Shown: one piece after another, positions 4,878 through 51,826 of the stretch
Layout of the letters: every line of letters starts with the position of its first letter
Numbering within the stretch: position 1 is the first letter of the stretch
Origin: Lepidodermella squamata
Taxonomy: Eukaryota; Animalia; Gastrotricha
Direction: 5' to 3'
Length of the DNA: 64,000 bases
NCBI GenBank assembly: GCA_047495785.1
Contig: JBLDXI010000103.1
Location: 62,001-126,000 of the forward strand
The notes under the pieces: generated by a model
Database searches by the model: none
Seen by the model: the letters and a program-made list of their open reading frames with translations, nothing else
Told to the model about the DNA's origin: nothing
Program-made: the position numbers and the translations under genes

Positions 4878-5071
4878 AATTTTCACCAGCTGGAACAGAT
4901 GCATTGTTCAATATTTATTCAGAGTTCAAAGCTCGGTTTCGCTTAGGTTCAGCTAAACGAAATCATGAATTTCAAATTCATTGAAATCAGTGTCTGGCCC
5001 GGTTCGTTGCGTAAGTCAGGTGACTGCTTTAAACTAGCGCAGAGCCGCATTTCCCATTTCTCTCGATTAAT

Positions 5072-32545: not shown

Positions 32546-33051
32546 AATTTTTTTACTAAAATAATTTTTAAACACTATTAACAATATTTTTAATTTTATT
32601 TTCAATTGCGAAAAGCCCTTAAATTTTAGGTGTATAAAAGAAATGATAAAACTGTGACTTTGATGACTCATATTGACGATTAATAAATCCGACTACGACA
32701 GCCATACGTGCAGAGAGAAGGAATTTCGAGACATTCGATGCATCGGAGGAGAAACGACGACTGAATGGAGGCGATGCGAGGCCATTTGAGATTCTAATCA
32801 AGATTGTGCCGGGTATAATGTGGAACTAGAAACGAATCGCTGCAGCAGTCGAGGACGCTGCCGTCGAAAAACTTCCAACCTCGAGTGTCGCGACACCCCA
32901 GCTCCGGGACTCCCACCATAGGAAGGTTGAAAAAACCACAGGGTGGGCCCTTTGATTACTTCGGCTTCATTGCCCGCATCAAATTTGTGTAATCCCGGGA
33001 AGCGGTTATCACCCCATTTTCCAGAGTTCTGTTGATCAACTCGGTGCATTT

Positions 33052-33305
33052 CGTCGGCGCCGTGCAGTAATGTAGCTTAACCATGCTATACGCACATTGG
33101 AAAATAAATTTTCTTATTTTAACGAATTTTGCCTCGAAACTGGTATCAAAATGACCGTCTTGATGCGAGGATAAAGAATATGTAAAATTTGTGGCATTTC
33201 GAGCGTCCAGTGCCACGTTAAAGCTGTTTGAGCGGTTTTTCGTCCGCGTACTGTTATTATTATTAGTGTGTGTGCAAATGCATATGCATATATGATGGCC
33301 GCATG
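33052..33305 (+). repeat. Left terminal inverted repeat of the Sola1 element
   Basis: Reverse complement of about 51580-51826; it explains the near-identical spurious ORFs 32956-33216(-) and 51548-51844(+). Confidence 0.9.
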
Positions 33306-33892
33306 TAGCATCTTTTCCCGCCGTTGTTCTTTTTTCTTATTAATGCTTTGATATCTTTTAGGCTTGGGGTTAAGGTTCGGTATCTCAAAGGGTATCTCAA
33401 AAATATTTATGTCTTAGTTTTTTCTGAAATCCGCCCATAAATAACTTCTGCTGATAAAAATAAATGTTTCGTAATCTCAACAACCGTTTGACAAGTGCAA
33501 CCGATGTGCAATAAAAACGACATTACTTTTATACACCTCGCCTTCTCCCATCAATCAATTCATAACTAAAAGTTATTGCCATGTACTAGCCCTCGGAGAG
33601 TTTGTTGTGAAGCGAACCTAGCTGTTGCAGCAACGCCGAATGAACTCAACACATCATTTTAATGCGCAGCTATGAGCCGAGGGAGAATCAAAGTCGCAAA
33701 ATTGCATCGTTTTCAGAAAGGTGTCAATAGCAATATTTTTGCATAAAATAAAATTATCATTCAGCGATAATAAAACAAAACTCAGGGTTTAAAACGATTC
33801 TTTTCTTACAAATAATTATTTATTACAATAATAATAATATGCAAATGCAAAAGAGACACTTTCGGACTAGAAATTTCGCGTAAAAAGAGACA

Positions 33893-34638
33893 CTACAAAA
33901 TTACAAAAAGATAGTGGATAAATAGGTTTTTTTTACGAAAATGAAGATTGATTGATTGATTGTTGATGTCATCGCTCATTTCGATAGGTTTTTTGCTAGC
34001 TGTTTGCAACCACTGGCTATTAATCCAGCCGCAATCAACATTTTAGTCAGTTGCCATATAGCCAGACCCTTGATGTTGGAATAAAAACAATCACAATTTG
34101 AAAATCAAACGCGTTAACTTTAACTTACTTGAGCGGCATCGGAGTAGCCAGATGCAAATCGCTAAGATGACAAGAGCAAATAGAACCCAAAGAATGACCG
34201 AATAAGCGTCGGTAATATTATTATCCTGGTGGGACAGAGAAAAATGGTTAAACTTCGTGATTAAACTCAGGTACATTCAGAACAAACCGGTAAAATCTGT
34301 GAGCAATCTTTCGAAATGTTCAGCACGCTGTTCGTTAGATAGGACACTGACAGGGTCTGTGCGTTTGTTGGCGGGGTCTTTGTTTTGTCTGTTGCTGTTG
34401 TGGAAGTTGTTGATGTTGTTGTTGTTATTGTTGTCGATTCAATGAGACTGCGACATACTCTGCAACTGCCAGACTTGGCGCACCATATGATATTGGCATC
34501 TGTAAAATCATTGCTGTAAGATTTTTCTAGCAAAAACTGGCAAAAAAACTTGCCAGTGGGCTCAAGACAAGGCGGTGATCCCGATATCGTCTCCAACATA
34601 AAAACCGCCAAAATCCAACTATTAGTAAGATTAATCAT
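33893..34638 (-). CDS. Small Cys-rich type I membrane protein (transposon cargo)
   Basis: Signal peptide; Cys module (FTDANIIWCAKSGSCRVC); Thr-rich stalk; GT-AG intron; TM AYSVILWVLFALVILAICIWLL followed by RCR. A possible third exon gives FKFQWLQ, similar to FKFQKVIRWLQ in 48091-48441. The 3' end is uncertain. Confidence 0.65.
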
Positions 34639-34908
34639 CGTTAAACTTTACTATTCAATAGAAAATTATTTGTATCATACTAAATTCAGCAGTAAACAGG
34701 CAACAGAGAAACTCAGCAAACGTTAGCAGCTGAAATCCTACGTAAATTATGAGAACGGTCAAAGCAATGATGCTCATTTGAACAGTAAAAACTGGCAACT
34801 GACTGTCTGTTACCCAAATCACGAAGTCAGCCCTAAACCACTAGCGGGGCTTTGATGGAAGTTGTTTGATTGATGTCAAGTTTGTGCGAAATTTGCTGAA
34901 AACTCCAC

Positions 34909-35220
34909 TTGTCACAAGTAGAAAACAATCGGGCCAGTTTGTTACGAGTAGAAAACAGATGTGCCTATTTGTTACGAGTAGAAAACAAATATTGGAGTCG
35001 CAGTTTAACACTTGACAGGATGCTCCAAGAAGCCCAGTTTAAGATGACTTGGTCTCGACAGTAAGAGAGCCTCCCGGGCCTTCGTGATGACAACTTTTCA
35101 AAGGATTCAACATTGCGCGCGAGTGGACACTAATGGTTTAAAGTATAAGTATTTGTTACGAGTAGAAAACAAATAGGTCAACTTGTTACGAGTAGAAAAC
35201 AGATGCATCAACTTGTTATC
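34909..35220. repeat. 30-bp-period minisatellite with conserved core TTGTTACGAGTAGAAAACA
   Basis: Three units at 34909-34990 and two full units plus a partial one at 35153-35220; the ~11 nt between cores varies. Confidence 0.7.
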
Positions 35221-35567
35221 AGTCCTAAACATACGGATGAACTTGGATGCATTGATGGGTTAGTCATTTTTTGGTCATTTTACAGGATCTAGAGGTTAAA
35301 GACAAACCTCTCCGAGTAAGTTAAGCGATGGAGATGGAAAATTTAGTTATAGTTCACAAGTTACTAGTTGCTACAAGTAGTGAAGAACAAGCCGAAGTCT
35401 CACAACAGATCTTGCAAATTAAATCAAAATAAAAGCTTTAAAACGATTTCGAGGCAAATCTTCGGCGAAAATGAAAATGAAATTTCCCACGCATGAATGC
35501 AATGAGAGAGACTTCTTTATTATTTTGTTTCGTTCGACGACGTCAACTGAGACTTTTTTGTTGAAAT

Positions 35568-35732
35568 GTATGTATGTATGTATGTATGTATATTAGCGTT
35601 GGATTCGCACTAAGGCGGTCTTCCATCCAACGGACGCAGATGGGCGCGTCGAGGTAAGGTGGCGAGTTACCTCTTCTTTGTGTAGACGAAATCGTCCACG
35701 TATTCTGCTTTCAGCAGTACTTTCAGGAGTTA
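35568..35732 (-). mobile_element. Short retroposon 3' end with (CATA)n tail, copy 1
   Basis: About 135 bp nearly identical to 40885-41043, next to an (ATGT)n tract. Confidence 0.65.
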
Positions 35733-36129
35733 GCGAAACTCCTAAAACTTGAAAATAACCCGCCAAAAGACGTTCTTGGTTTTCAAATGAAATAAAATAA
35801 ACAAGAATTTTTTAATTACGTTATATTATAATGCTAAAATTAATTGAATAATGAAAAAAGCACAGCCTAGCACGCCGACGGCCAGCCTAGCACGACCGAT
35901 CGCCGAGCAAAAAAAAACGTGCTAGCAAGCTTGCCTTCTTTCACTTTCATCAACTTGATCTTGCGAAGCATACTTGCGTGGAAAAGTCTTTGTAGTCTGA
36001 AATCTGAATAATCTGAAATTTTCTATTGGTTAAAATAAGTTATTTTTCCAACAATATGGCTTTTATTGCATAGGTTTTTCATTTGATTTTTGTACTTTTG
36101 TACTTTTGTACTTTTGTACTTTTGTTGTA

Positions 36130-38052
36130 ATGGCTGAATTTTTCCGTGGTGTTTTGCCGCCGGCCGTTGGATCGCGTGCTCTCGCCAACGATGGCGTGGT
36201 CAACGACGGTGTGGCCATCAGCGGCCATCAGCGGCAATCAGACGATTTGGCCATCAGCGGTGTGGTCATCAGCAGGGAACAGCACAACTCCAACAGCACA
36301 ACGCTTGTAGGTTTCATTTACATTTTTTTATTTTTGTTACCATTTCGAATGCTCTTGATCATGCATTAAACAACTTTTGATACTGTTTCCTTCAATTGAG
36401 CCTTTTCCATTCATCTGTTACATAATACTGTAAAGCCATGAATTTCTTGTTTAGCGAATTTAATTTCTGCGTGACCGATTTTTACACCCATTTGCAAAAA
36501 GTCCTCGTAGGACATATGATTTTACATTATTTGTATTGTATTTATTTGGAGTTTATTTGTATTTTCAGGAGCATCAGTATTTCTACATAGCGATAATCGC
36601 CGTCACCAGCGTAACCGGCGCTATCGTAATTTGCTGCTGTTGCCTGTACATATTTACAAAAACCAGAGCTCTACGTGCTCGAATCGTCGGTAAGCTGTAA
36701 TTAATTTGCTTATTTTTTTTTATTCATGCTTTCTACTTCAGGCTGCCTCCGAGAGCGCGCCTTTGTTAGCGTTGACATTGGTTTGTTTGTTTTAGTTGCT
36801 AGATTCTTGTAATATTTTTTTCAACTCTAGAAACGATTCGCGGCGCGGTTTCGCCGTTGCTTGATAGTGTAGCAACGCCGTTTCGGCGTGCGTTCGCTCA
36901 CCTGAAAGACTTAAAAGATGCTGGGCAATCTGTTGCTGGTGCCAGCTCACCGGATGAAAACATTGGTAAAAGCTGAAACCCGAAATCGTAATTATCATGA
37001 TTATTCGTTTTTGCAGAATCTTGCGAATTTAAGGAGCCTGATCATCCTCAAGTGCCAGGTTTTGATTTGATTATCACACATTTCATTTGGCTAACATTGT
37101 TTTACCTAGGATCTTCTGAGATTGGGCCAACTCCTCGTGTCCCCGTGAAGCATGCTCGGGTCTGCGATGCCGATGCGAATGCCGCTGAACTCCGCGCCGC
37201 TAATGCCATGCGGCTCTTTCACATGGCGGAAGAACAGCGTGCCCGCCAAGAGGCGGCTACGCATGAAGCTGTACATTACGCTCGCGCGGCAGAGGCCCGT
37301 GCGGAGGTTGCCAATGCGCGAGCTGCGGCTGCCGAAGCACGGGTCGCTGCTGCAGAGGCGCAAGTTGCCGAGGCGATGGGCCTTCTACATGCCATCGAAA
37401 ATGCGATTACCGCTGAGCAGCAGCGGCTGGCTCAGTTACATGCTCAGTTACATCCGCCCAATTTCCATCTAACGCCTGGTTAGTTAACAATATTTTACAC
37501 CCTGTTTTTATAATTTATATATTTTTACAGGAGAGGAGGTTTCGGTCGATACAAATTTGTTCTCTACCCCAACGGCTCGCTCGCTCACTGGAAACAACGG
37601 TATCAACGATTTGTTATGCTTGTTAATTTTGTTTTAAAGTCTGAATTGGTTTTATAGACCCTACTAATGCTGCGCTGCCACCATCTTCATCTTCATCATC
37701 TTCAACTTCATCTTTACCGGAATGTCGACCCGACTTATCAGGTTCAGAGTCTGATCATGCTCCGGCTGCTTCGACTGCTCCGGCTGCTTCGACTGCTCCG
37801 GCTGGTTCGACTGCTCCGGCTGGTTCGACTGCTCCGGCTGGTTCGACTGCTCCGGCTGGTTCGACTGCTCCGACCGACCAGAAAAACATGCAGGACGCTA
37901 CAGCCGTTCGTTGCTACTGCAAAACCGGCTGTTTAGCCCAGTGCGGCTGCCGCAAAAATAACCGGCGTTGTAGCCCGGCGTGCTTCTGCGTAAGGTGGTT
38001 TAACTGTCAAAACACTGTGACAGTTAAACCACCTTGCGCAGAGGGCAATTAG
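36130..38052 (+). CDS. Membrane-anchored coiled-coil protein with a C-terminal CXC (tesmin/TSO1-like) domain (transposon cargo)
   Basis: Eight exons joined by GT-AG introns read through without stops: MAEFFRG...NSNSTTL|EHQYFYIAIIAVTSVTGAIVICCCCLYIFTKTR (TM), Ala/Glu/Arg coiled coil (about 37180-37450), (APAAST/APAGST)x6, then CYCKTGCLAQCGCRKNNRRCSPACFCVRWFNCQN; stop at 38050-38052. Confidence 0.75.
37759..37872 (+). repeat. 18-bp coding tandem repeat, about 6 copies
   Basis: (GCTCCGGCTG[C/G]TTCGACT)n. Confidence 0.9.
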
Positions 38053-38459
38053 ATTGGTTTGATCTTTGCTCTCAGATCGCGTGCTCTTCAGTCATAGAAC
38101 CATTAGATTTGTCAATTAAATTGCTGCGACATTCATAAAGTTGAGCATGCTGCTCAGTTTCAAAAATTGATTTGCTCCTCGATCTTATTTTTGATTGTAG
38201 ATTTTCGATTTTTTTGAACGATCATCTTCTTCTTATTTCTTATTTTTCTTCTTACTCGCTGCGTTAATAAATCTTCAGCATTCTTCGCATTCTTCAGCGT
38301 TAAAAAACGCTGCGTTTGCTTATTATTTCTTATTTTTCGATGGTTTTAACTCTTGATCATTTGATACTCGCGCCTGAAAAACTATTGTTTTTGACCGGTT
38401 TCGACTCTTACTTACCGTGATGCGGATAAATAAATACTACAAAATATAACTGCTCAAAT

Positions 38460-38605
38460 GAGACGTGGCAAGCGATTTCGGCCCTATCTCTATCTTCGCA
38501 GTCATTTGAAAATTGGGTGTTGCGCAATAATGATTATGCGTCAGCTGTTGCCTTTTCAAATGCCTGTGAAGATAGAGATAGGGCCGAAATCGCTTGCCAC
38601 GTCTC
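38460..38605. mobile_element. 146-bp MITE with GAG...CTC termini and a 4-bp AAAT TSD (Sola2/Sola3-like ends)
   Basis: AAAT|GAGACGTGGCAAGCGATTTCGGCCCTATCTCTATCTTC...GAAGATAGAGATAGGGCCGAAATCGCTTGCCACGTCTC|AAAT. Confidence 0.85.
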
Positions 38606-39479
38606 AAATGAATAATATCATAATATGTCGCCTAGTTGTTTCGCAACGATTATAACTCTTACGCCTGTTATACAACTTTTTCATCTTCTTCCTTCGTCTT
38701 CGTGACTGCCTTTTCCTTCGTGCCTTTTTCGTCGTGCCTGCCCTAATTTGATATTTTTTCATCTTTTTGACTCTTGCTCGTATTTTTGTTACTGCTTCGA
38801 ATCAAAACTCTTGCTGTTACGAGTTACGAGTTAGTTGTTGTTAGAGTACTCTTACTACTCCTGTTATTGCTTGACACTGTTTTGGCTCATACCTTACATC
38901 AAATTGCTCAAATTGAATATTTAGTCAAATATTTGGAATATGAATAATATTTAGTCAATAAATAGTACGATTTGGTAATTTGATAATTGATCTTTTCATT
39001 GTTTTTCATTCGAGAATCGGCGACTTTGCTGCCACAGGATGTACCATATATGCCGCAATAACATGCCATATATGCGCGGGGAAGTCGAATTTTCCTCATG
39101 AAAATGACCCGCGCGATTGTTCAAGTCAAGTTCTTAACATGAGCTGTCGATCGGTTCACTAAAGTGTGCCAGCTTTCAAATATTGGCACTGATCGTTCTA
39201 TTCATTTTGGCAATGCGAACATCAAATTCAAATCGAAAAATAAGTTCTCCCACGGAGCCGTCTGAGTCATCCCATCATTATCGAACAAGAAAATGAACCT
39301 TTCTAGCTGCAAACAGTGAATTTATTCATAACTTTCTCCTCAACACTTCATCAACACTATAATTTTAACATAACATAACTATATAATTTCAACACTGTAA
39401 TTATTGTTCTAAAATATTATAATAATGAATGCTCTGGAACAGCGCATAAATCTAACGTTTAGGTAAAGCAAAAAAATAA

Positions 39480-40285
39480 TCAAGTTTTCGGGTTACAATA
39501 ACAGCAAAACCACTTCAGCTTTACGATTGACTGAAATTGCGAGAACTCGCGATTGGTCAGCAATGAACAAGTTTTGTGAAAATACATATGGCAACAAGAG
39601 CACTCAATAGACAATTGTTCTTTTCGCGAATTAGGGTGGCTAAGATCTGAGAGACAGGCTCCGCAAGGCCATTGATATTTCAACTTTTTTGAGATAGATA
39701 CAGGAAAATGCCGACATGACCGTTTGGTGAAATTTTGAAGAACGTTTGATGACGCTGGACGGCGCCTATTGAAGGAGCCTAGGTCTCGATGTAGCAGCTG
39801 CCTTATGAAATCCTGAATCCGATCAAGGCTTGGAGTCGTTAAGAACGGGTTGTTTTCATTCATGGCTGACAACTCTTCGTGTATTTTCGAAGCTGTTTTT
39901 AGCCTGAAGTTTTCTTCTATAAACGCCTTACTGCCAACTGACATTCGAGAGATTTGGTATGGTAATGGATGAGTTGGATGGCTATTAGCAGAGCGTTGGA
40001 ATATCATTTCTCCGTTATCATAAATCGTCAATAAGGCCGTAGATCGACACTTCTCACTCGTTGTTTCGGCTAAGAACCTCCCATACCCCCTACAGCGAAA
40101 ATAAAAAGAACGTCTTCCAGAACCTGAAAAAGACTTATTATAATTAATCGAATATACCACATGTCCTGATTCTCACCAAGTTTTCTGGAATAGGTGAATT
40201 GAAGTTCTGGATAATTATCTTGTATATACTTCTTAGCAGCTAGAATTGAAGCACCAGCAGCAAATTTTACTTGGATTACATGCAT
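39480..40285 (-). CDS. WRKY/GCM1-like zinc-ribbon plus PHD finger protein (transposon cargo)
   Basis: Two exons with a phase-1 intron (gtgaga...ttcag): YSRKLG|SGRRSFYFRCRGYG...KCRSTALL...SHPTH, then a C4HC3 PHD (CGAC...IECSCCHMYFHKTC...WFCCYC). Confidence 0.75.
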
Positions 40286-40604
40286 TTCGATTTAAGTAGT
40301 ATTAATCATCCCTAGAAACTAAGAAGATGTGACAGGCGCAAAGAAGCCGTGCGCAAAAAGCATTAGCAAAAAAATCAGCAAAAAAATCAGGAAAGTTGGA
40401 GGGCGCCACAACAGCCTATAATCAGTGGCTTTTCCACTCACTCAGCGAAGCCTACAAACGCCGTCGTAGCAAGAAAGCTACCAGAAGACTTATTTGGAGA
40501 ATGATTTACAAAAGTAGAGAATATTTACATGAGGTAATTCCACGGAGCCAAAAATAGAGTATTATTTAACGCCGGAACTATAAGACACTACTATACTTCC
40601 AGAA

Positions 40605-40884
40605 CTATAAGAAAATAAAGTGTATTATCATCGGCTTGACTAGCGACGAGGGTGCCTCGTGCCTCGGGGTCTCAGGATCCCTGCTGCACGTCCACATGGT
40701 TTTAGCCGGGTGGAGCAGTCGTTTGCCTGGCACATTCACCCATCGCAATCGCAGGAGAACTTCATCAGGACTGACGTCGAGAACGGCACGAACGGCTTCG
40801 TTTTGCGCGTGTTGAAGACGATCCAGCTGGGTCTTGCAACCTTGATCGATGACGGCGTCGCAGTAGTTGAACTTCGACCCATCA
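40605..40884 (-). mobile_element. LINE RT C-terminal fragment related to the 16199 element
   Basis: NYCDAVIDQG...LDRLQHAQNEAVRAV...LRWVNV parallels NYGDLTLGQA...LAKLQSTQDRAVRII...LGWVNV. Confidence 0.7.
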
Positions 40885-41043
40885 TGTATGTATGTATGTA
40901 TGTATGTACGTTGGATTCGCACTAAGGCGGTCTTCCATCCAACGGACGCAGATGGGCGCGTCGAGGTAAGGTGGCGAGTTACCTCTTCTTTGTGTAGACG
41001 AAATCGTCCACGTATTCTGCTTTCAGTAATACTTTCAGGAGTT
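40885..41043 (-). mobile_element. Short retroposon 3' end with (CATA)n tail, copy 2
   Basis: Near-identical to 35568-35732. Confidence 0.65.
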
Positions 41044-41363
41044 CATCTCTGAGGATCTTCGGGTTTTCGGAAGATCTTATTGATGGCGGTAAGTCATTCC
41101 ACTTGCTAGCAGCACGAAATCGAAAGCTGAGATGGTGAGCTTGTCGAGGGATCAATTCATTTTTAGAAGCTTTTTAATCTTGAAGTTTATAATTTCTCTT
41201 TCAAAATGAATATCAAAATCTTTCAAGTTATGAATGTAAAATTACATTTTACCAGATTTTTATTCTCTAATAAGGGCCTTGACAGAACAAAAGCTTCCTT
41301 TGTCAATCATCCACTTTTGGCGCGCTTCGTCTTGCGTTCATTTTTTCGACTCCTTGTTGCAAA

Positions 41364-43038
41364 ATGAATGCTACGACATATTATCTGATAACAATTATCG
41401 CCATCTATGCTCATGTCGATGGAAAAATTGAAAAACGCACGGTGAAACTATCTCCTGTTTTGGAGAACCCTCTTGCTGATGCGCCAGATATCGACTGGGA
41501 AAATGTGACGGATGGGTTTTTTACCGGGCCAGTAAATACCGAGTGTGAGACAGTAGCTTACATTTGGGGTAAGTATTTGGATTCATTTTCGAACATTGAT
41601 CGCTAAAAAACATGTTTTTCTCTAAAGAGGGGCATTACTATCTTGGAAAACTTATGGCTGTAAAAACGGGCAAAGATAAACGAGACTGTGGAGATAAGGT
41701 GAGCCCTTTAACCTGACTTAAACATCATTGGGTTCGTTTTCATGACTCAGATCATCAAAGATATGAAGGAGGTTGTCAAAAAAACATTTCCTCTCACTGC
41801 AGATGATTTGGTGAGCAAATTATTTTAGTGAACATGAGTTAACTCAAGTGAATTTTATTGTTAGAAATCCTACACTTTCCGGATTCTTGTATGTATCAAT
41901 CCCTCTTATGAAACTGCCTGCAAAGAGGGAGCTGATATTTTGGCTTGTATGAAGGTTATTTAATTGCTTAATCTTTCAATTTGATGAATTTCTATTAAAA
42001 GGCCTTTGACGAGAAGAATACTGGAAACTTACTCCCTGGATTGGTATGTAATAAGCATTTTTCCAGAGCAGTTTGCTCATTTGATTTATTCTCAGATATC
42101 CATAGCTTACTTTATCGACTTCGCTGAGGACACAAGCTGCATGCTGCGTAGCTATTCGAAGGTGTGGCTTACTCAAACGCTATGGGATCTCAGTGTTTCC
42201 GTTCCGGTGAGAGAAATGTTCACAAACTGGATACCAAGTTTAGTCAGGGCCATTTCTTTGGCTCATACCCCTATTCAATCCACGCTTGAATATTTTGCGA
42301 AAAAATCCACCCTGGTCCGGGAAGTTTTAGCTCAGGTACGTTTCTGGCAAACGATGATCATAATTTTGACTTTAATTGTCTTAGATTTCAATTTTTATCA
42401 TCAGAAGTCCGAATTTTTCAGCCTATCAGTGCTATTTCTACATCGTGGTAGCTTTGTATCTATTATACCAATATTACTACTCGGGATCAGATTCTATGCG
42501 AAACAGGCTACTAATGCAACTAATGCTACTGGCGGTCTGCGGTGCCTTGGAATTAGTTGTAACAAGCTATGCAACCGAGATAAAGATTTAAGACACGGTC
42601 ATAGTAACCCAATTTGTCGCTCTATCGCTGCGTTATTTATATGTGAGCGAGCTATATCTTAACCGACCTCTGATGTGGTATTTATCTCTCATTTACATCT
42701 TATCTTTTTTGGCTGTTGCGCGCATGATTGAGAAATACATGAATAGAGAAGATGGTGGTGGTGGTGGTGTGACAAACGATTCAGACCGTGAGGTTATTGC
42801 TACTAATAAAATTGAGCCCATAGTTAATTTGAAAACTACTGAAACAAGTAGCAGACTAGCCTCCGATCCATCTTCGTCTGTCTTGCGATCTGGAAGAAGA
42901 ATCGTCCATAGCGAAAGCAGTCGTGTCATTGCCGAAGAAAAACGTGACGTGGGCAACAATGAATCGTCATCTAAGAGCGAAGAAAGTCGTTCAAGTATTA
43001 TTCAGCCTTTGATCAATCGCTTTCGGCCATTTCGATAG
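41364..43038 (+). pseudogene. Brambleberry/GEX1/KAR5-like nuclear-membrane protein (cargo; one in-frame stop)
   Basis: Six exons: signal peptide; Cys domain RDCGDKIIKDMK...LTADDLKSYTFRILVC...ACKEGADILACMKAFD...AYFIDFAEDTSC; then 3-4 hydrophobic spans (YFYIVVALYLLY...RNRLLMQLMLLAVCGALE...) and a Ser-rich basic tail. TAA at 42589-42591. Confidence 0.6.
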
Positions 43039-43411
43039 TATAGATCTTGCTACTTTAACCAGCAACAAGGAACTCTTTAGCAAGGAACTCTAGCATGTTG
43101 TAGGTAACCTAAGGAAATCTCCGCCTCTGGCTTTTTATTGATAATTGATATTGATATTTGATATTGCAAAATATTGCGTTTTATTAGTAGTCCTTTAACT
43201 CTTGTGCGCGAATCTAGCCAATTAATTATTATTTTGTGGTTATCATCTTCATTTTTCCTTTTTGCACGCCTTCTAAGAATGTAAATTCACTGTCAATTAT
43301 AATAAAATACAAGTGTGATCTATTATTTGATAATTATAGCTACCCACAACTAAGAAATAAATGTTTAATTTTCTAAATTTCTCTCACATTTTAGTCAGTT
43401 TTATTTATCGT

Positions 43412-44912
43412 ATGGCATACCGCAAATTTCACGCAGAGTTTAATGTTCTAACGATAATTTGGAGCTCAGCAATTCTATCTGAGGCATTCTGTTTAACAAC
43501 CAACAACTGCGAAAATTTCGAAGAAATTAGTGTTCCGCCGTGGGCCCTCGTTGAGGATGGGGCATACCAGATTTCCTTTTCAGACTATTCGCCGCCGATC
43601 CCTTCTCAAGTGTGCTTAACTAAGTCGGAATTATGGCAACTTAATTATTTATTTTGGATAAACAAGGTAAGGTTTTGGTTTGCCTTTTGGATATTTAATG
43701 AAAAACTTTATGCCAGTACCGAATAATACCAGCATCAATACAAGATGTGGCTAAATTGGAGATTTATACTGGCAACGATTGCTCTGAAAAGCTCGCTGCT
43801 AGATGCTGTGCAGTAACTGCAAACCGTCGTTCGCCCGGCATTCTTCAGATTATGTCACTATTTCTACCAAGCTTATTTGATGCATCAGACGAGGACGATA
43901 AAGATGCCTTCGAGACGGCGCTTGTGTCGGCCTTTGATTACTACAGCATTGCTATATGCCCCTTGAATTCGACTGTCGATCTGCAATTGGCTGAAAGTTA
44001 TTTTGATTTTAATAATTTCATTGTCACGCTAACAGGTGTTCTAATGGTTGTAGCATCGAAATGGCTAACTGAAACGAATCTAGCTTATTATAGTTTTTGT
44101 TCGATGAGCGGAAGTTAAGCGGGGATAGCTGCTGCGTTTTATTTTATATCACAATTGTACAATACTAAAAGGCCTGTTGCCTATGTGTTGCTGTCATTTA
44201 TCGCTGGATCATATGCCTCTTTTGAATACCTAAATTATACGATTGATAATGCACATAATATTTTATACGCCTTAATATTTTTGTGTTCTTGCTCTGCGTT
44301 TGTTATTTCTTGGATAAACGGTCCTTTGGTCTCGAGTAGGCCGAAAATGGCGATAAACGTTGTTTTGATCATAACGGGCTTTTTTTAATATATTACGGAA
44401 CCTCATTCAAGCCACAACATACAGCGTTATTTTTCGTGCCAAGTTTTACCTTTTTAGTTTATTCCAGCTTAAAGAATACAATTTATATGAGCCTAGCCCT
44501 AATAACTGGAAAAAAATCCGTGGAGACTGGCCCTGGAGTTGCCGTAGTTGGGAATGGTCTTGACGATGCGATAGTTGGCGCTAGCCCCAAATCTAAAGCC
44601 CCTACAGCTGTAGAGACTGAACAAGTTCCCAGCGTGGTAGCTGTAGGTCTTGCAGGAGAAGGCAGAATAGATACGCCGCCTACCAGACTCATTGCTTTTC
44701 CTTATATTTCTGAAGCAGAATTTGAGTATCAAAGTATACAATATACCGCTGAACAGCTAACTGCCTTGCGCAATTTTGCTACCGCTAATATGGCAACCGT
44801 AGTTGCTAGGATAACCCATCTTCGTCAATTTATGGCATTTCTAACCGGAGTTAATTTATATGTAGTTAGACAGGAAGCCCAGCCGTCCGCCCAGGCAAAT
44901 GATGTGCAATGA
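43412..44912 (+). pseudogene. NEMP (TMEM194)-like inner nuclear membrane protein (cargo; one stop and one frameshift)
   Basis: Signal peptide; intron 43667-43716; TM region FDFNNFIVTLTGVLMVVASKWLTETNLAYYS...NGPLVSSR; C-terminal ISEAEFEYQSIQYTAEQLTALRNF...TVVARITHLRQFMAFLTG. These match the NEMP1 motifs LSRSxxFYYS, YGPLxxxR and LTEEEYxxQGxxETxKALxELRxF...VSRIxSPxRFAxFVEG. TAA at 44116; 1-nt loss in the T-run near 44385. Confidence 0.8.
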
Positions 44913-45455
44913 CGAACATTATTATAATCTCACATGAATATGATTTATAATGCCATTATGATGAAGGTCCCGCAATATTTTTTGCATGCAATCTTTGGAC
45001 TTTCTCAATGTTCTTGCGTTACCTATAAAACCGAAAACAACTACAGTGCAAGTCGTCTAAATCGGACTCGGGTCGCGCTCGGGCCGCGCTCGGGTCGCTC
45101 GGGTCGCTCGGGTTGCGAATTCCAGACTCCCAAAATCCGTCAGGTTTATACCACCAGACCGGTTGAGAATGAAGTCCACACTTTTGGACTCAAAAACTTC
45201 CGGTTTAGACAACTTTCACTGTATATTATAAATATTATACCGATCTCATCTCACAATAAAATTATATTGTATAAGCTAGAAAGTATTTTTTATAAAAGTT
45301 TTCTTATATTTCTTATTGCTTCTTTGTTTATTTCTCCGTTTTCCGCACATTAACCAACAATTAAACCGTTAAACAACTCCGTTAAAAAGTGTGATGTGCA
45401 TTTCAGCTATTTAAATTTATTCTAACTTTAGTCGATTAATTTTTTGAGAATATTT

Positions 45456-45794
45456 ATGGCCACAACGACTTGTCGGGAGGCAACGATTGAGGAGATTGAA
45501 CGTTGCCGTTTATTCAATCTCGATTGTTCGGGTCTATGCCCCGCCTTTAACCCGACAACGTCGCCAGCCAACAATGTGCCGCCTGGCCTTTCAACCCCGA
45601 TGTTGATTGGTCTAATATGCGGGGGGGTAGTGCTTTTGTTAGCAGTCGTGGCCGCGACAGGGGCTGTAATCGTCATTTGTCGGCGCAGGCGTCGTTATGC
45701 CCCTATCGATCAACATCATCAATCTACAATTCAATTGTGCTTGTTCGCGTCGAACGAACAAGGCGCTGCCGATGAGAATGCTGTAACAGCCTGA
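45456..45794 (+). CDS. Small Cys-rich single-pass membrane protein, subfamily A copy 1 (cargo)
   Basis: C-x10-CRL-x4-C-x3-C, Pro/Thr linker, TM, RRRRRY, LCLFASNE...VTA. Confidence 0.75.
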   Translation: MATTTCREATIEEIERCRLFNLDCSGLCPAFNPTTSPANNVPPGLSTPMLIGLICGGVVLLLAVVAATGAVIVICRRRRRYAPIDQHHQSTIQLCLFASNEQGAADENAVTA

Positions 45795-46011
45795 TCAAAA
45801 CATCGACTTTGTTTTTACCTAGTTTTTTATGGCCTTGCCTGTTACTTGCCTGTAACTTAACAATAATTTTTCGAAGAATTGATTGTTCCTTAATTCGTGC
45901 AAAAAATGATATATATTATTGAAATATTATTATAAATATTATTAAACCATAAATAATTGAATTATTTTCGTTTTTTTAGATATTACATTCAATCTCGTAT
46001 TACATTCTCAA

Positions 46012-46250
46012 ATGCCTTGCGTGTCATTTAGTTTTGACGACCTGGTAAAATGCCGCCTTGAATTGTGAGACAACTGTGATAATTTCTGCAATGGGGCGAC
46101 TCCCATCACAGAGCCTGGTGTTTCCACCACGTCCGGCGCAGTAACCTCGCCTAGCCTGACTTCTAGCCTGGTTTCTACCACAACACCCACCACACCCGCT
46201 GCCGATACGCCGAAAACTGACGAAAAATCTATTGGTCGTTTTTGTCGTTT
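46012..46250 (+). pseudogene. Small Cys-rich membrane protein, subfamily B copy 1 (disrupted)
   Basis: MPCVSFSFDDLVKCRLEL*DNCDNFC...ADTPKTD is paralogous to 48091-48441; TGA at 46066 and the TM is lost. Confidence 0.7.
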
Positions 46251-46394
46251 CAACTTCCACTGCTACTTCCCCTGCAATTGTAAACTTTGGTTACCTGAGT
46301 CAACAGAGATGAAATCTCTCTCTCTCTCTCTCGTTTTTATCGAAATCATGAGCATGAAATCACGAAGTTCATGTTCAAGTCATGTTCAACTCCT

Positions 46395-46632
46395 GGGAGT
46401 TCCTGTTCTACTAGTCAAATTGAAAATCGCACAGAGCGTAAAATGCGAGCTTGGGTGCAATCACCGCGCTTCATCGAATCAAGAAGGGAGTTCCTGTTCT
46501 AGTCAAATTGATAGTCACAGAGAGCGTAAAATGCGAGCTTGGGTTCAATCACCACGCTTCATCGAATCAAGAAGAGAGTTCCTGTTCAAGTCTGACTGAT
46601 AGTCACACATGCCGTAAAAGGCGAGCTTGGTT
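46395..46632. repeat. Tandem repeat of about 90 bp, roughly 2.5 copies
   Basis: gagttcctgttc...cacagagcgtaaaatgcgagcttgggt...cgcttcatcgaatcaagaag is repeated. Confidence 0.75.
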
Positions 46633-47552
46633 TTTGTATCAGTATTAGTCTGATTTAGTCTTCCTCATTGTGTTGGAAAAGAAAAAAAAATTAGTCGGTA
46701 TAATCGAATTCAGAAACTCAGATGTACTCGATGTGTTAGATAAACGGAATTTCCATGGCCAATCGGAGACATTTCCGCAATCCGATATACTACAGGATTT
46801 GTGCCCAATTTTCAGATTTCTTCACCGGGGCCAGTGATGCGCGAAAACATTAGCGGCTGATGTGGAGAAAACGTCTTTTCTTTGCGCTTATAAAGCCCCG
46901 CTTGAATTCCTCAACTGCTTCGACAACTGTCGCGTTTCATGACAACTGTCATGTGGAGAACCAGGCCAGACTATTCCAAGTCCTGACTTCGGCCGGACTT
47001 CGGAATTTTTAGTAGTCCAGTCAGTAGCTTCGTCCAAAACGCGTCTGCATATTACGCGTCAGCTTCGTCCTTTTCGTCCGGCTACGAGAAGTTCAGTAGT
47101 TCAGCTTGCCAGGAGTTTGCCAAGGTTTCGATTCTCTAAACGAAAAATCGATTCCATGTGACAAGCATCACAGGTCTGGATATGCTTTTGTATGCAATTT
47201 TGATGGTAGAATTGTTTCCGCATTTTTGAAAATGGAATAAGTTCGCGCAGTTGATTTATAACATGCGAGAACAACGGCCGTGAATACACATACACTTCTC
47301 AAAGATTGAAATAGCGGACGGAACCCAGCTCAATTTGGAGCTTAAGAATTTATAGAAAAATAGCTTCTATAGAAAAATGTAAGGGCCGAAAAGTGTGCAC
47401 TTGGAGAATGCGAGGGACTAGAAAATCGAATGGACTGAGTGATCGTGATTTACGAAAAATTGAAATTGCTTGCATATTTAAATTTATCGAATCGAATCAA
47501 ATTTGTGTTAAATAATTGCATTTATTAAATTTTAGTGTTCAATTTTTATTAA

Positions 47553-47891
47553 ATGACTTGCATTCCACCGTCCGCTGAAGCCTATGAGCGATGTCGATTG
47601 TTGCATGTCGACTGCAACATATGTCCGCCATCAACAACGAGCTCGGTTACAACCTCAAACCCCTTGCCGCCTTCTCCAGCTGAGACGGGATTGTCTAAGC
47701 TGGAAATTGGTCTGATCTCAGCGGGGATCATTATCATTGTTATCATTGTTATCGTTGTTATCATTTCTGTCGTATATATTCGCCGTCGACGGCGTTATTC
47801 TCGGCTTGAGCAAAGCCTTCCGCTTTGCTTGTTCGCCTCTAACGAAGAGGCCGAGGGGAATGCCGAGGGGAATGCCGAAGTTACGGCATAA
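47553..47891 (+). CDS. Small Cys-rich single-pass membrane protein, subfamily A copy 2 (cargo)
   Basis: MTC...ERCRLLHVDCNIC, TM, RRRRRY, LCLFASNE...VTA; clear paralogue of 45456-45794. Confidence 0.8.
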   Translation: MTCIPPSAEAYERCRLLHVDCNICPPSTTSSVTTSNPLPPSPAETGLSKLEIGLISAGIIIIVIIVIVVIISVVYIRRRRRYSRLEQSLPLCLFASNEEAEGNAEGNAEVTA

Positions 47892-48090
47892 TATTATTCT
47901 TAGTTTATTACTTTGTATCTTGTATCTTGCCATATAATAAAGTATTGCCATAATATTATAATCTTGCCATATTACTTGCCATGTTATTTGCCGCAGTATA
48001 TAATGTTAATTTTATTATTTCATTCGGTATTAAATGATCTATCGATAAAATTCCTGCCTGTTTCCTTTTAGAAATTAAAAAATTATTATT

Positions 48091-48441
48091 ATGGCCGATT
48101 GTGTCCCGTTTAGCGAGGATGCTGTAATAAAATGCCGCCTTGAATTAAGTGCCAGCAGTTGTGTATTCTGCGACACGACTTCTACGACAGGCACCTCCAT
48201 TACTACTTCCACCACGCACGCTGGCGATACGCCGAAAACTGACGTTTTGATTATAGTTTCAGTTGTCCTATCGGTCATCGCCATTGTTGGTGTCGCTATT
48301 CTGGGATTCAAGTTCCAGAAGGTGATACGCTGGCTCCAAAATGTAATTAGCCGAAGTCGGCGAGGTTTGGAACGGCTGCACATATACCGACTTGACGGGC
48401 GTATAATTGACACAATCGAGCTACCTGAAGATAGCTTGTAG
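48091..48441 (+). CDS. Small Cys-rich single-pass membrane protein, subfamily B copy 2 (cargo)
   Basis: MADCVPFSEDAVIKCRLELSASSCVFC, Thr-rich stalk, TM VLIIVSVVLSVIAIVGVAILGF, basic amphipathic tail. Confidence 0.75.
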   Translation: MADCVPFSEDAVIKCRLELSASSCVFCDTTSTTGTSITTSTTHAGDTPKTDVLIIVSVVLSVIAIVGVAILGFKFQKVIRWLQNVISRSRRGLERLHIYRLDGRIIDTIELPEDSL

Positions 48442-48570
48442 AATTTTTTTAAATTATTCTGCTCATATCTGCATAATATTTCTTGATCATTCGATTCATT
48501 TAATGATACATCTTGGTTATTTCAAATGCTGTAGGAAAACCTTAAAATATTGGCGATTTAACTGATTATT

Positions 48571-51184
48571 ATGAGCCTTCCATCAACATCGGCTGCGACT
48601 AAGGTCGCTGATTTGGAAATCCCCGTGTTTCCCAATGATAAATTAAAGAAACCGATTCGGCGAGTAAAAACAGCTTGGGTCGATGAGGAGAAGCGAATGA
48701 GAAATTCTGGAGAATCATACGTGAGGAGGGAAATTGTTGCTAAAGACCGAGATACTGGCGAGCTGCGAAAGAAACGAAAGTTATCTGTCGTTCGGAAACG
48801 CGAGGGCAAGCGGCTGTTGAACTGCTGCAAAGAAAAGCGATGTTGGGAAAAATACACGGACGTGAAAATAGCAGAACTGAGTCAACAGTTTAGGTCGACT
48901 GGGTCCATCTTTGACCAACGTCAGTTTGTTGGGAGATTTGTCTCAAAGGATTTTGTCAAGTTTCGAAGTAGAATTACCTACACACTACCTGCAATTTATG
49001 CTACGGAGAAATTCCGAGGGAAAGCGGCAAAAATTCAGCGGATTACTGTTTGTCGCAGGTTTTTCGAGTCTGCCTTGGATGTTACGAATCGCTTTGTGTC
49101 TTACACTTTGGAGAACAAGCTTAGTCCCGACCAGTTGACTGTTTATCCGGACTTTCGGCGTGCGAAGAAAGAAGGGGGCAGAAATACCTTGAACGAGTTG
49201 ACGAGAAATTCTGTTATCAATTTTGTGAAACCGCGCTTAAAAGCGTAAGTTTCTGGCAAGTTCTATTATGAAAATGTAAATGATTGGTTATTTTTTTCAT
49301 AAATATAATACAGAAAACTAAGCCATTATCGAAGAAAAATTTCAAAGAGATTTTACGTATCAACAAGCATTACAATTGGAAGTCTCTACAGCGACTGGGT
49401 GGCTAACATACGGTCTGCACCTCAGCTTGGCGTTCGCCGATGCAATTTTGAGTCATTCCGTACGCTATTCCGTACCCATTTCAGGTGAGTGCATAATATA
49501 TGCAACTTGCCGCCGTTTTCTGAAAGCATCATTTGCATTATTATAATATACAGATCTGTCTCGTTCCAACAACCCAGAAATGACAAGTGCAAAATAATGA
49601 AAAGATTTTGCACAAATTTCTGCTTTCTCGATTTTATATTTCATTTTCTTAGGTATGCGCACGGTGGAATAACATGACGGATGCGCAAAAAAATCGTAAT
49701 CGTGCCAAGCACCAGCAGCATCTCAATGAAAAGGACGCAAGCCGAGAATTTCGGCGTTTGCGGCGTGAAAGAGCGGAAGCATCAAGGCAGCCAGGTTTTG
49801 CTGGACGGAAAAGCGCAATAATTGAGGTGATGCTTTAATTTGACAATTCTTGATTTATGAACATCGTTTCATTCAAGGTTGATGCTCAGTCAAAATTGCG
49901 CACTCCTTGCTGCGCTTTTCCCTACAAGCGGAAGCTGATAACAACCAATTTTACGATTTTTGACCTCACTGAGCGGACCACATTCAATTACTTGTTTGAA
50001 GAATTTAATGGTAGAAATTTGTTGGAAAAAATAATTCTTTTTGTCTTGAAACTGGCCAACTTTTATCTTTTCAGGATCTCTGGGTGCCGCTGAAATTGGG
50101 TCTATTCTGCACGATTATATTAAGAAGCATCTCGCTGACGATATTGTGGAATTGACAATTGTCTCCGATTCGACAGTTGGAGCTGGAAAGAATCGGTTAG
50201 TTTAATTATTGATGAAGATTTTTTTGTATCATTAATCAGGTTTTTATTGTTTAGCTTCATTCCCAACGCAATTTATCATACGCTCAGAAAAGTCAACTTC
50301 GAGCGTGTTCAACAAGGCAAGGAAAGGCTACGCTTTGTTGATTGGCTCTTTCTAGTTCCTGGTATGTTTTTAGTCGATGGGAAACTACCGACAATTTTGA
50401 ACTATTTATGGCGTTTCAGGACACACTACAATGACAGTCGACGCAATGCATAGCTGCATAGAAAAGTCCCAGAGAAGATTTGGCTCCGTTACCGACCCTG
50501 CTGAGTGGCGCGAAATTATCAAAAGTGCTCGACAAGGAAATGAAAAGGAGAAATTTCAAGTCGTGGAACTTGACTGGAGCTTCTTCTCTGATTTTCGCCG
50601 AAAGCCCAATTATTGGACAACTCTACAAAACAGCAGCAAATTTCGCATTACCGAATATCAATTTTATCGGTTCAAGATTAAAATCGGAGAGCATGAACTG
50701 TGGGCCAGAAAAAGCTATGTCGATATAGCTACAGATGGCACAGGCCCGCTAACTCCAGACCAGCGAATGCTGACAGACAAGGATGAGGACGAAAAGATAC
50801 GTTTTGATGTACACCTCACTCCTGTGAAGAATAAAGGTCCATTTGGTTATGATAACGGTAGGTAGATAATAATAACTTGCCTTCTCTGCTCGTTATTTTA
50901 TTTGTTATTTTATCATGACTGCTGAACCTGAAAAAGTGTACACTGGGCCGCGAAACCTCACGTTTGATAAAAAGATGGATTTGCTGTCTTGGATTGCGGA
51001 TGGTGTTATTCCACCGCGAATGCTTGATTACTTCAAGGCTCTACCATGTGACATTTCTTCAGAGGAGAAACGCCGGGCATATGAAAATCGGCTAGCCCTG
51101 ATTCGAGAAAAATATAAAGACAACGAATGGACAGCCGATGACGTGGATATGGCAGACGAAGAAGAGCTTGTCGACAGGCTTTGA
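48571..51184 (+). CDS. Sola1-type DDD transposase, intron-containing, probably inactivated
   Basis: Spliced motifs: VCRRFFESAL, SHYRR, NDKCK|VC, IIE|VDAQ..L.TP...YKRKL...NFTIFD, GAAEIGSILHDY, LTIVSDSTVGAGKNR, FLVP|GHTTMTVDAMHSCIE. The expected donor at 49594 reads ataatg instead of gtaatg. Confidence 0.85.
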
Positions 51185-51579
51185 ATTTTGGTATTGGTGT
51201 TATCCTCGTATTATATATAATATATAGTTTTACCTCTTGTTTTAATGGTTTCAATTATATTATTATTATTATTATTGTGCAGAAATTGAAATAAATTATT
51301 TGTTGTGTTTTAATGAAAACATGCGTTCATTAAATGCGTTGTTGTTGTTGTGTCTTTGAGCGGCTTCTGGTCAACGATGATAAACGGTGAAGAAAATCTT
51401 AGATAGCAGGCACTTGAGAACAACATTTTCAGGGGAATTTTATTATTCTTCTCGTATTTTACGTCAAGTCTCAATAAATTTTTAGTTATCGGAGCTACCT
51501 GTTACGCACAATGCAACGCAAAATAACAACGAATTTCCATAAAAGTTATGTCGCCTGCCCGCCCATGCTTTAATAAGCG

Positions 51580-51826
51580 CATCATGCACAACAACATACA
51601 TATGCGCACACTAATAATAATAATAGTACGCCGACTGAAAAACCGCTCAAACAGCTTTAACGTGGCACTGAACGCTCGAAGTGCTTCGAATTATATATAT
51701 TCTTGCTCATCGCATCAAGGCGGTCAGTATGACACCGGTTTCGAGGCAAAATTCGTCAAAATAAGAAAATTTATTTTCCAATGTGCGTATATCATGGTTA
51801 AGCTACATTACTGCACGGCGCCGACG
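51580..51826 (-). repeat. Right terminal inverted repeat of the Sola1 element
   Basis: Reverse complement of 33052-33305, followed by the ATTT TSD at 51827-51830. Confidence 0.9.

Follow-up and report, generated by a model that had tools for sequence, protein, structure and literature searches.

The 64 kb window, meaning the whole stretch of DNA analysed, contains an 18.8 kb copy of a Sola1-type element (33052-51826), delimited by a pair of terminal inverted repeats (TIRs) and flanking target site duplications (TSDs). The contig is not human. With moderate confidence, this copy is regarded as a single inserted Sola1 element of autonomous type and unusually large size that carries passenger genes. 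The features of the element are summarized in Table 1.

Table 1. Features of the Sola1-type element and its flanks (positions in the window)
Feature	Position	Strand	Basis
Left TSD, ATTT	33048-33051		fits AWWT preference of Sola1
Left TIR, ~220 bp, terminus CGTCGGCGCCGTGCAG	33052-33270	+	repeat scan, self-BLAST
Putative gene for small protein with Cys motif, Thr-rich segment and TM helix, two ORF pieces	34094-34647	-	ORF list, alignment
Repeat, 166 bp, 95% identical to 40884-41043	35566-35731	-	self-BLAST
TM-anchored CXC-like gene, six exons, 390 codons, open	36130-38052	+	gene model
Palindrome, 59 nt arms (93% complementary), 40 nt loop	38454-38611		repeat scan
FLYWCH-like/PHD gene, two exons, 250 codons, open	39480-40285	-	gene model
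Nested, putatively LINE-derived fragments	40608-41173	-	ORFs, self-BLAST, motif comparison
Gene with KAR5/Brambleberry-like architecture, seven exons, 453 codons	41364-43038	+	gene model
NEMP-like gene, two exons (43361-43666, 43717-44912), ~500 codons	43361-44912	+	gene model, Pfam
Small single-pass membrane protein 1, 112 aa, intact	45456-45794	+	ORF, alignment, hydropathy
ORF with Thr/Pro-rich segment, then ~91 bp tandem repeat (46395-46633)	46069-46633	+	ORFs, self-BLAST, alignment
Small single-pass membrane protein 2, 112 aa, intact	47553-47891	+	ORF, alignment, hydropathy
Small single-pass membrane protein 3, 116 aa, intact	48091-48441	+	ORF, hydropathy
Sola1 DDD transposase gene, nine exons, 701 codons	48571-51184	+	spliced gene model
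Right TIR	51607-51826	-	repeat scan, self-BLAST
Right TSD, ATTT	51827-51830		matches left copy

Element boundaries

The preliminary description of this DNA had proposed one TIR-bounded element with an ATTT TSD and a transposase at its right end, and all of these features were recovered. An inverted-repeat scan gave arms at 33051-33241/51637-51827 and 33236-33270/51607-51641, which were joined by self-BLAST of the window as a single inverted match of 221 bp (91% identity, E 3e-83); the inverted repeats are thus real, but about 220 bp long instead of the ~250 bp first given. The outer 34 nt, starting with CGTCGGCGCCGTGCAG, are identical at both termini, each of which is complete to the last base. 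When up to 3 mismatches were allowed, the terminal 24-mer had two sites in the window, the two TIR ends, against a chance expectation of 0. No further TIR copy was found within the 64 kb window by the 24-mer search or self-BLAST, no inner TIR remnant between the ends by short-word BLAST, and no additional Sola1 fragment anywhere in the window by self-BLAST. An inner TIR, which would mark two separate elements, is absent.

A 4 bp AWWT target is a hallmark of Sola1 (PMC3845634), and ATTT is present on both sides of the copy. Under the AWWT preference independent pairs of insertions share the tetranucleotide in about 1 in 4 cases, so the shared ATTT proves a single event only weakly. Computational reconstruction of the empty site with one ATTT restored no clear ORF.

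Transposase gene

The transposase model contains zero stops and zero frameshifts. Its eight introns are short (51-79 nt), and intron 3 has a non-canonical donor, ATAATG, at 49594. Catalysis is assigned to D354, D429 and D481, which are invariant among the aligned relatives; the motifs around them are conserved. The DDD core carries the clade E.10 motifs, which read EVDAQSKLRTP, FPYKRKLITTNFTIFD, AAEIGSIL, IVSDSTVGAGKNRF and FLVPGHTTMTVDAMHSCIE in the window transposase and FDLEKVLTTP, YYKRKFAVYNFTVYD, SNEIGTCLL, FYSDNCGGQNRNRF and FLERGHTQS in Sola1-1_AP (PMC3985635, supplement file 5). All exons are collinear with Logan contig L001 (tblastx), and the spliced transposase matched L001 with E 3.5e-106 and metagenome ORFs with E 2e-43 to 1e-16 (tblastn). 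Pfam DUF7869 was matched by more distant relatives. The element belongs to the Sola1 superfamily by the catalytic core motifs, the AWWT-type 4 bp TSD and the TIRs, as had been proposed.

Cargo genes

The cargo comprises ~15.5 kb and contains at least seven further intron-containing gene models as well as nested LINE fragments; its size agrees with the ~15 kb estimated earlier, while the gene number, then about nine, is now given as this lower bound. The genes are densely packed, largely co-oriented with the transposase and mostly intact. Reading frames are open throughout in the transposase gene, the CXC-like gene, the PHD gene and three small membrane protein genes, and disabling lesions were found in two cargo genes only, the NEMP-like and the KAR5-like gene; the earlier picture of a decaying copy with stops in several cargo genes was therefore overstated. 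The intactness of most cargo genes is compatible with ordinary host genes as well. GC3 is 0.43 for the cargo and 0.45 for the transposase, just slightly lower than the 0.50 (range 0.42-0.63) of the flanking ORFs. The 45 kb of host sequence on the flanks contained no cargo paralogues. Mucin-like, lineage-specific membrane genes occur in the flanks too.

The reading frame of the NEMP-like gene is interrupted by an in-frame TAA (44116-44118) and shifted within a T7 run (44379-44385), owing to which the gene was searched piecewise. Adjacent ORF pieces matched Pfam NEMP (PF10225, an inner-nuclear-membrane family) at profile positions 2-43 (E 0.012, 15.7 bits) and 192-243 (E 0.038, 14.1 bits), corresponding to the TM1 region and the C-terminal domain, both below the gathering score of 28.7 bits. 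The odds that adjacent pieces would by chance both select one and the same family out of 24,736, and in the right order, are estimated at ~1e-6, and the two sub-threshold but collinear matches are jointly convincing. The model has a hydrophobic N-terminus and a Cys-containing N-terminal region of ~200 residues, followed by a hydrophobic region and a C-terminal domain; only one helix (284-302) lies above the threshold of a simple hydropathy filter. The N-terminal hydrophobic segment, the long Cys-containing region before the membrane region and the length of ~500 aa resemble the NEMP family, from which the gene differs by its sub-gathering scores, its stop and frameshift and its location inside a transposon. 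These data support the earlier NEMP assignment in the form of a divergent NEMP-like protein, probably a distant relative of the family.

The neighboring KAR5-like gene has one in-frame TAA (42589-42591). Its predicted product has a signal-like hydrophobic N-terminus, cysteines at 61, 89, 122, 131, 140 and 171, and TM helices at 278-296 and 333-351. KAR5 family members have a signal peptide, an N-terminal domain with six conserved cysteines and two to three C-terminal TMs (PMC4291462). The product thus has the KAR5/Brambleberry/GEX1 architecture, which by itself is weak evidence. No match to Pfam Tht1 (PF04163) was obtained at E up to 0.1-10 with any exon piece, a weak search, as unspliced pieces were used and the Cys-rich region is spread across four short exons. 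The Brambleberry/GEX1/KAR5 identity given in the preliminary description is accordingly reduced to a likeness of architecture.

The product of the CXC-like gene is predicted to have, besides an N-terminal segment, a single TM helix, an Ala-rich helical stretch, STAPAG repeats and, at its C-terminus, the cysteine pattern C-x-C-x3-C-x3-C-x-C-x6-C-x3-C-x-C-x5-C. The CXC piece matched nothing in Pfam at E up to 10 or in PDB at E up to 1. Of the membrane-tethered CXC protein suggested earlier, the TM helix and the cysteine pattern were found but no profile or PDB match, and the resemblance to a Tesmin/TSO1-type CXC domain is one of cysteine pattern.

The FLYWCH-like/PHD gene contains a 53 nt GT-AG intron. 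The N-terminal Cys/His pattern of its product, which we take to be FLYWCH-like, had no profile match. The C-terminal region (piece residues 18-76) matched the PHD fingers of Pygopus in PDB with E 1.8e-4 to 2e-3 (phmmer) and Pfam PHD (PF00628) with E 0.023 (15.2 bits, cutoff 24). By this homology the PHD finger of the proposed PHD chromatin reader is confirmed.

Small membrane protein 1 consists of a CRL..C motif, a Pro/Thr stalk, a TM helix and the sequence RRRRRY. Protein 2 is 45% identical to protein 1, and protein 3 is 27% identical to protein 2. The ORF at 46069-46633 is probably a degenerate member of the same family. The product of the putative gene at 34094-34647 shows a weak likeness to it (18% identity in the alignment) and matched no Pfam family. 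A family of small single-pass proteins is thus present as described, but of the five members then counted three are intact, and the total is three to five.

At 40608-41173 the C-terminal motifs of a reverse transcriptase ORF, compared with the LINE ORF at 16193-17041, are out of order, so at least two LINE fragments would be present in this putatively LINE-derived region. The repeat at 35566-35731 has ORF text in common with 40608-41042 and is interpreted as the tail end of a LINE copy, 5'-truncated and nested in the element. The palindrome at 38454-38611 may be MITE-like or a hairpin.

Comparison with Sola1 relatives

Canonical Sola1 DNA transposons, for example Sola1-1_AP, were reportedly described by Bao, Jurka and Kapitonov in 2009. 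The DDD core motifs, the 4 bp AWWT duplication and the TIRs are common to these elements and the window copy. The distant metagenome relatives L006, L009, L010 and L012 are TIR-bounded and 5.5-5.8 kb long, and in L012 ATAT adjoins a CGTCG terminus. The mean length of Sola1 in bivalves is 5.4 kb (PMC10294476). These values fit the usual length of a few kb stated earlier. At 18.8 kb the window copy is ~3-4 times longer than its relatives of 5.4-5.8 kb. A single long transposase ORF is found in each of the two relatives with ORFs listed (L009 and L012), whereas the window copy contains at least eight genes; the transposase genes of the metagenome relatives are intronless, in contrast to the eight introns found here. 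The copy thus departs from the typical Sola1 size and single-gene description, which characterizes typical members and is no formal criterion.

No cargo homologue was found at any of 21 related loci. Searches of the window, the metagenome contigs and the protein collections gave no second copy of the element. Neither a cargo homologue nor an empty site was found in the searched collections, which apparently do not include the source genome, since exact look-ups of nine window ORFs gave no match.

Origin of the element

A single insertion, the favored explanation, would have proceeded by binding of the right-end DDD transposase to the ~220 bp TIRs, excision of the whole TIR-to-TIR segment and its reinsertion at an AWWT tetranucleotide, duplicated here as ATTT. 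Everything between the TIRs would have been carried passively, including the at least seven extra intron-containing genes, which would encode a divergent NEMP paralogue, a protein of KAR5-like architecture, a TM-coiled-coil-CXC protein, a FLYWCH-like/PHD protein and three to five small mucin-like membrane proteins. The LINE insertions into the element would have come later. Because the relatives are 5.4-5.8 kb long, the extra 13-15 kb would be a lineage-specific addition, and most simply the extra genes are passengers acquired within the lineage, through the capture of a block of host genes or through expansion of the region that separates the left TIR from the transposase gene. The unit presumably moved as a whole and its cargo, which has no proven role in transposition, was captured. 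The nonsense and frameshift lesions in two cargo genes would be unexpected for resident functional host genes. The lack of cargo paralogues in the flanks also favors this explanation. That a single copy is available counts against a passenger-carrying Sola1, as do the mostly intact cargo genes, the GC3 close to that of the flanking ORFs and the empty-site reconstruction described above.

It is unlikely that there is no unit at all, and that a solo left end of one Sola1 copy and a left-truncated autonomous copy happen to be separated by 18 kb and to match in orientation, with resident host genes between them, two of these being pseudogenes. Such an arrangement is favored by the chance of about 1 in 4 of sharing ATTT, the 9% divergence of the TIR arms, a cargo GC3 that overlaps the host range, and interior genes that are mostly intact and resemble the mucin-like, lineage-specific membrane genes of the flanks. 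It requires, however, two separate truncations, each precisely deleting the inner end without trace, while the outer termini are complete and identical over 34 nt and the 64 kb window is free of any other Sola1 fragment. A long-standing accessory module of the Sola1 lineage, tethering the element or chromatin to the nuclear envelope or biasing nuclear fusion or transmission, is distinctly unlikely, although the NEMP-like gene and its neighbor of KAR5 architecture plausibly point to the nuclear envelope, the PHD finger is confirmed, and the genes are dense, mainly co-oriented with the transposase and mostly intact. The cargo proteins also diverge strongly from canonical families, as is frequent in fast-evolving genes borne by elements, and a literature search found no description of such an element. 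Against this module stand the absence of profile support for KAR5/Tht1 and CXC, the fact that both 'nuclear-envelope' genes are exactly the broken ones, the lack of cargo homologues at the 21 related loci, the TIR-bounded relatives of just 5.5-5.8 kb, and the absence of a second copy that would show conservation of content and order. The idea of nuclear-envelope 'machinery' put forward in the preliminary description derives from gene names and is speculative. It is highly doubtful that a Sola1 lineage stably carries a nuclear-envelope gene set, composed of a NEMP paralogue and a KAR5/Brambleberry-type protein along with a PHD reader, a membrane-anchored CXC protein and small membrane proteins, by which it would gain access to germline or zygotic nuclei or bias them.

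Relation to known elements

Descriptions of Sola1 elements present them as compact transposons with a single gene. A near-intact transposase together with more than 13 kb of complete spliced genes would show that Sola1 can move whole gene blocks, which to our knowledge is documented for few superfamilies of eukaryotic cut-and-paste elements only. If other copies keep the same genes, the element would be a rare DNA transposon that brings along membrane or nuclear-envelope proteins as accessories, and the role of transposon-borne host-like genes could then be tested directly; should the cargo prove unique to this locus, it would be a neat but ordinary passenger capture. If the nuclear-envelope reading were true, the element would represent a cut-and-paste transposon equipped with an accessory module directed at an organelle.

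Among the gene-capturing or composite cut-and-paste elements are Pack-MULEs, CACTA captures, Ac/Ds macrotransposons and the FB-bounded 'TE' elements of Drosophila, in which host-like genes between transposon ends are mobilised passively by a transposase, as proposed here. Captures of the Pack-MULE type usually comprise gene fragments, whereas the window copy holds several complete multi-exon genes, and composite macrotransposons normally keep their inner ends, which are absent here. Giant cargo-carrying elements are known as fungal Starships, medaka Teratorn and nematode Mavericks with cargo. These use tyrosine recombinases, piggyBac-herpesvirus fusions or integrase/polymerase modules, reach tens to hundreds of kb, and their cargo is known from several copies, in contrast to the single Sola1 copy described here. 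What they share with the window copy is a large element in which the cargo genes outnumber the mobilisation gene.

Element structure

An inverted-repeat scan and self-BLAST of the window returned a single long inverted pair, 33051-33270 against 51827-51607 (221 bp, 91% identity, E 3e-83). Both termini of the element read CGTCGGCGCCGTGCAGTAATG, with the first 34 nt identical, and ATTT target-site duplications (TSDs) flank them. Within the window the terminal 24-mer, with up to 3 mismatches allowed, is present at these two termini only (chance expectation 0), and short-word BLAST with the whole terminal inverted repeat (TIR) found no inner remnant. On the basis of the inverted pair, the duplications, the unique termini, the absence of an inner remnant and the transposase model below, the TIR/TSD/transposase structure of the preliminary description is judged to be real; its TIRs, put there at ~250 bp, are nearer 220 bp. 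The terminal 24-mer had no match in a scan of metagenome contigs, and reconstruction of the empty site by removal of the element restored no decisive ORF. The features are summarized in the table.

Features of the Sola1-type element and its interior
Feature	Coordinates	Strand	Structure and state
TSD, ATTT	33048-33051 and 51827-51830		four bases outside each terminus
Nested 5'-truncated LINE pieces	35566-35731 and 40608-41173
TM, Ala-rich helix, STAPAG repeats, CXC-like Cys pattern gene	36130-38052	+	6 exons, 390 codons, open
FLYWCH-like pattern and PHD finger gene	39480-40285	-	2 exons, 250 codons, open
Gene of KAR5-like architecture	41364-43038	+	7 exons, 453 codons, one TAA at 42589-91
NEMP-like gene	43361-44912	+	2 exons, ~500 codons, TAA at 44116-8, frameshift in T7 run 44379-85
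Small single-pass membrane protein genes	45456-45794, 47553-47891, 48091-48441	+	one intact exon each
Weaker candidate members of the small-protein family	46069-46633 and 34094-34647
Transposase gene	48571-49244, 49314-49484, 49554-49593, 49653-49826, 49878-50010, 50075-50195, 50255-50361, 50420-50857, 50937-51184		9 exons

Transposase and its relatives

The transposase gene was modeled from a three-frame translation of the right end together with tblastx alignment to a related Logan contig (L001). The product of 701 codons is free of stops and frameshifts. Introns measure 51-79 nt and seven are GT-AG; intron 3 (49594-49652) has the donor ATAATG instead of GT, its exon junction restores a conserved KCKVC motif, and the donor may be a lesion of the splice site or else a non-canonical form that is tolerated. 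The spliced transposase matched L001 with E 3.5e-106 and intronless ORFs of 583-924 aa on JGI metagenome contigs with E 2e-43 to 1e-16. Alignment of these relatives placed three invariant Asp (D354, D429, D481) within conserved blocks, which Majorek et al. 2014 (PMC3985635, supplement) also show for Sola1-1_AP of clade E.10; more distant relatives match Pfam DUF7869. The element was assigned to Sola1 because it shares these catalytic blocks and has an AWWT-type target, the latter a hallmark of Sola1 (PMC3845634). Catalytic core, TSD and TIRs all fit the assignment proposed earlier.

Eight short introns interrupt the window gene. The metagenome relatives have none, and L001, the closest relative, apparently lacks several of the eight, one ORF covering the equivalents of window exons 2-5. 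Comparison of the sequences suggests that introns may have been gained within this host lineage.

Word-indexed protein searches with the N-terminal and C-terminal exons gave no match, an uninformative result given the length window and low sensitivity of the search, which missed a protein (P0001) of 37% identity. An exhaustive search of representative proteins with the C-terminal exon returned 9 matches, the best with 37% identity over the query exon, and no close copy in that library. A profile scan of metagenome contigs identified 18 distant Sola1 loci, all devoid of cargo homologues; the scan of viral contigs gave no match. The L001 contig stops 93 bp upstream of its transposase gene and shows no TIRs. 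At four other loci (L006, L009, L010, L012) the transposase ORF is bracketed by 35-39 nt TIRs 5.4-5.8 kb apart. L009 and L012, the two with ORFs listed, have no second long ORF, and L012 has a CGTCG terminus in common with the window element and the duplication ATAT. A mean Sola1 length of 5,445 bp was reported in a survey of bivalves (PMC10294476). Judged by the compact relatives and this mean, the window copy has 3-4 times the typical length, with the extra DNA located between its left TIR and the transposase gene.

The region 4569-12626 of a 455 kb ENA contig (L003) holds a distant DUF7869/Sola1-like transposase between candidate inverted repeats of 27 nt that are spaced 8 kb apart, with an OTU-domain ORF ~1 kb outside the left repeat. 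The superfamilies reported to have left traces in human DNA do not include Sola (PMC5753468).

Interior genes

Cargo genes were assembled by eye from three-frame translations and their splicing was checked in scripts; broken genes were given an X at each break, and the pieces were searched separately. Every intron in these models is GT-AG, and with two exceptions they measure 47-59 nt. An apparent frameshift in the PHD gene proved to be a canonical 53 nt intron, and another in the KAR5-like gene was rejected since the acceptor of intron 5 sits further downstream. An alternative genetic code, tested as the cause of the in-frame TAA in each of two genes, was rejected. With breaks visible in just two cargo genes, the description of this copy as decaying was an overstatement.

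The PHD finger was recovered in searches of PDB (Pygopus PHD fingers, E 1.8e-4) and Pfam (PHD, E 0.023), as predicted; AlphaFold2 without an alignment gave a pLDDT of 36 for the whole FLYWCH-like/PHD protein. For two adjacent ORF pieces of the NEMP-like gene, Pfam NEMP was the best or sole match (E 0.012 for profile positions 2-43, E 0.038 for 192-243), each under the gathering score of 28.7 bits. The chance of the neighboring piece choosing the same family among 24,736, in correct order, is estimated at ~1e-6, and the second match is not a hydrophobicity artefact, as it lies in the soluble C-terminal domain. The NEMP assignment is accepted in qualified form, as a putative divergent paralogue with two collinear matches.

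The Brambleberry/KAR5/GEX1 likeness is one of architecture only. The product has a signal-like N-terminus, exactly six Cys in residues 61-171 and C-terminal TM helices, an arrangement that fits the published description of the family (PMC4291462). No exon piece matched Pfam Tht1, a weak test given that the Cys-rich region is spread across four short exons. For the CXC protein the cysteine pattern was found and nothing beyond it. The small membrane protein encoded at 47553 is 45% identical to that at 45456 and 27% to that at 48091; a word-indexed protein search with their alignment detected no relatives.

Repeats and host flanks

A 166 bp direct repeat (95% identity) occupies 35566-35731 and 40884-41043, 5.2 kb apart inside the element; as C-terminal motifs of a reverse transcriptase lie next to the second copy, both resemble tails from a single LINE family. 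A distinct LINE copy in the left flank (16193-17041) has a 283 aa ORF for a reverse-transcriptase C-terminus. A near-perfect hairpin, GGTGGTTTAACTGTCA...TGACAGTTAAACCACC, at 37989-38030 in the CXC gene's final coding exon, directly after the Cys pattern, explains the tblastn match of the CXC protein to its own reverse strand. In the interval from the CXC gene to the PHD gene, the palindrome at 38454-38611 (59 nt arms with 93% complementarity, 40 nt loop) is possibly a MITE or foldback element. At 46395-46633 a ~91 bp tandem repeat (87% identity) lies within an ORF, beside a Thr/Pro-rich segment resembling the small membrane-protein family.

Two inverted-repeat pairs, 17315-17423/18829-18935 (110 bp, 87% identity, 1.4 kb spacing) and 30909-30980/31958-32029 (72 bp, 93% identity, 1 kb spacing), are likely to represent further small TIR elements of the host flank. 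The contig is judged not to be human on account of its introns of 47-79 nt, its Sola1 element and, by eye, its arrays of ankyrin-repeat genes; it resembles DNA of an invertebrate or early-branching eukaryote. Tandem 102 bp (34 aa) arrays at 55141-55990 and 62598-63689 fall in long ORFs that appear rich in ankyrin-repeat motifs; one such ORF, 61120-63704, comes after a putative NB-ARC/NACHT-like segment. A putative kinase followed by ankyrin-type repeats and a putative family-C-GPCR-like gene are further features of the flanks.

Discussion

A single large Sola1 element carrying passenger genes is the reading we hold with moderate confidence, favored by complete matching termini, identical TSDs, the lack of inner ends and the lesions in two interior genes. 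Caution is due because the AWWT preference gives a shared ATTT roughly a 1-in-4 probability by chance, most interior genes are intact, and codon GC3 of the cargo overlaps that of flanking ORFs. These same points would suit two unrelated fragments bracketing resident genes, an arrangement that the matched termini make unlikely; GC3, with overlap among the cargo, the transposase and host ORFs, is not decisive.

Cargo homologues were absent from 21 fetched loci and from the window's own flanks, and none of nine window ORFs was present in an exact look-up against a 15-billion-protein collection. That the interior genes form a true accessory module of the element is more doubtful still: the NEMP-like and KAR5-like genes are the two that are broken.

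For a single element with passengers, ordinary Sola1 cut-and-paste is the best-supported mechanism. The DDD transposase would recognize the TIRs, and the DNA from TIR to TIR would be excised and integrated at an AWWT site, giving the 4 bp duplication, with the interior genes carried passively. The interior may have grown by capture of a host gene block in gap repair or by mobilization of a distant left end.

Full-text literature searches found no papers connecting Brambleberry or NEMP1 with transposon cargo. The element, a transposon and neither a virus nor a toxin, belongs to Sola1 by its catalytic core, TSD and TIRs but departs from described members in size and gene content. It is also similar to gene-carrying or composite cut-and-paste elements, from which it differs in having whole multi-exon genes and no inner ends.
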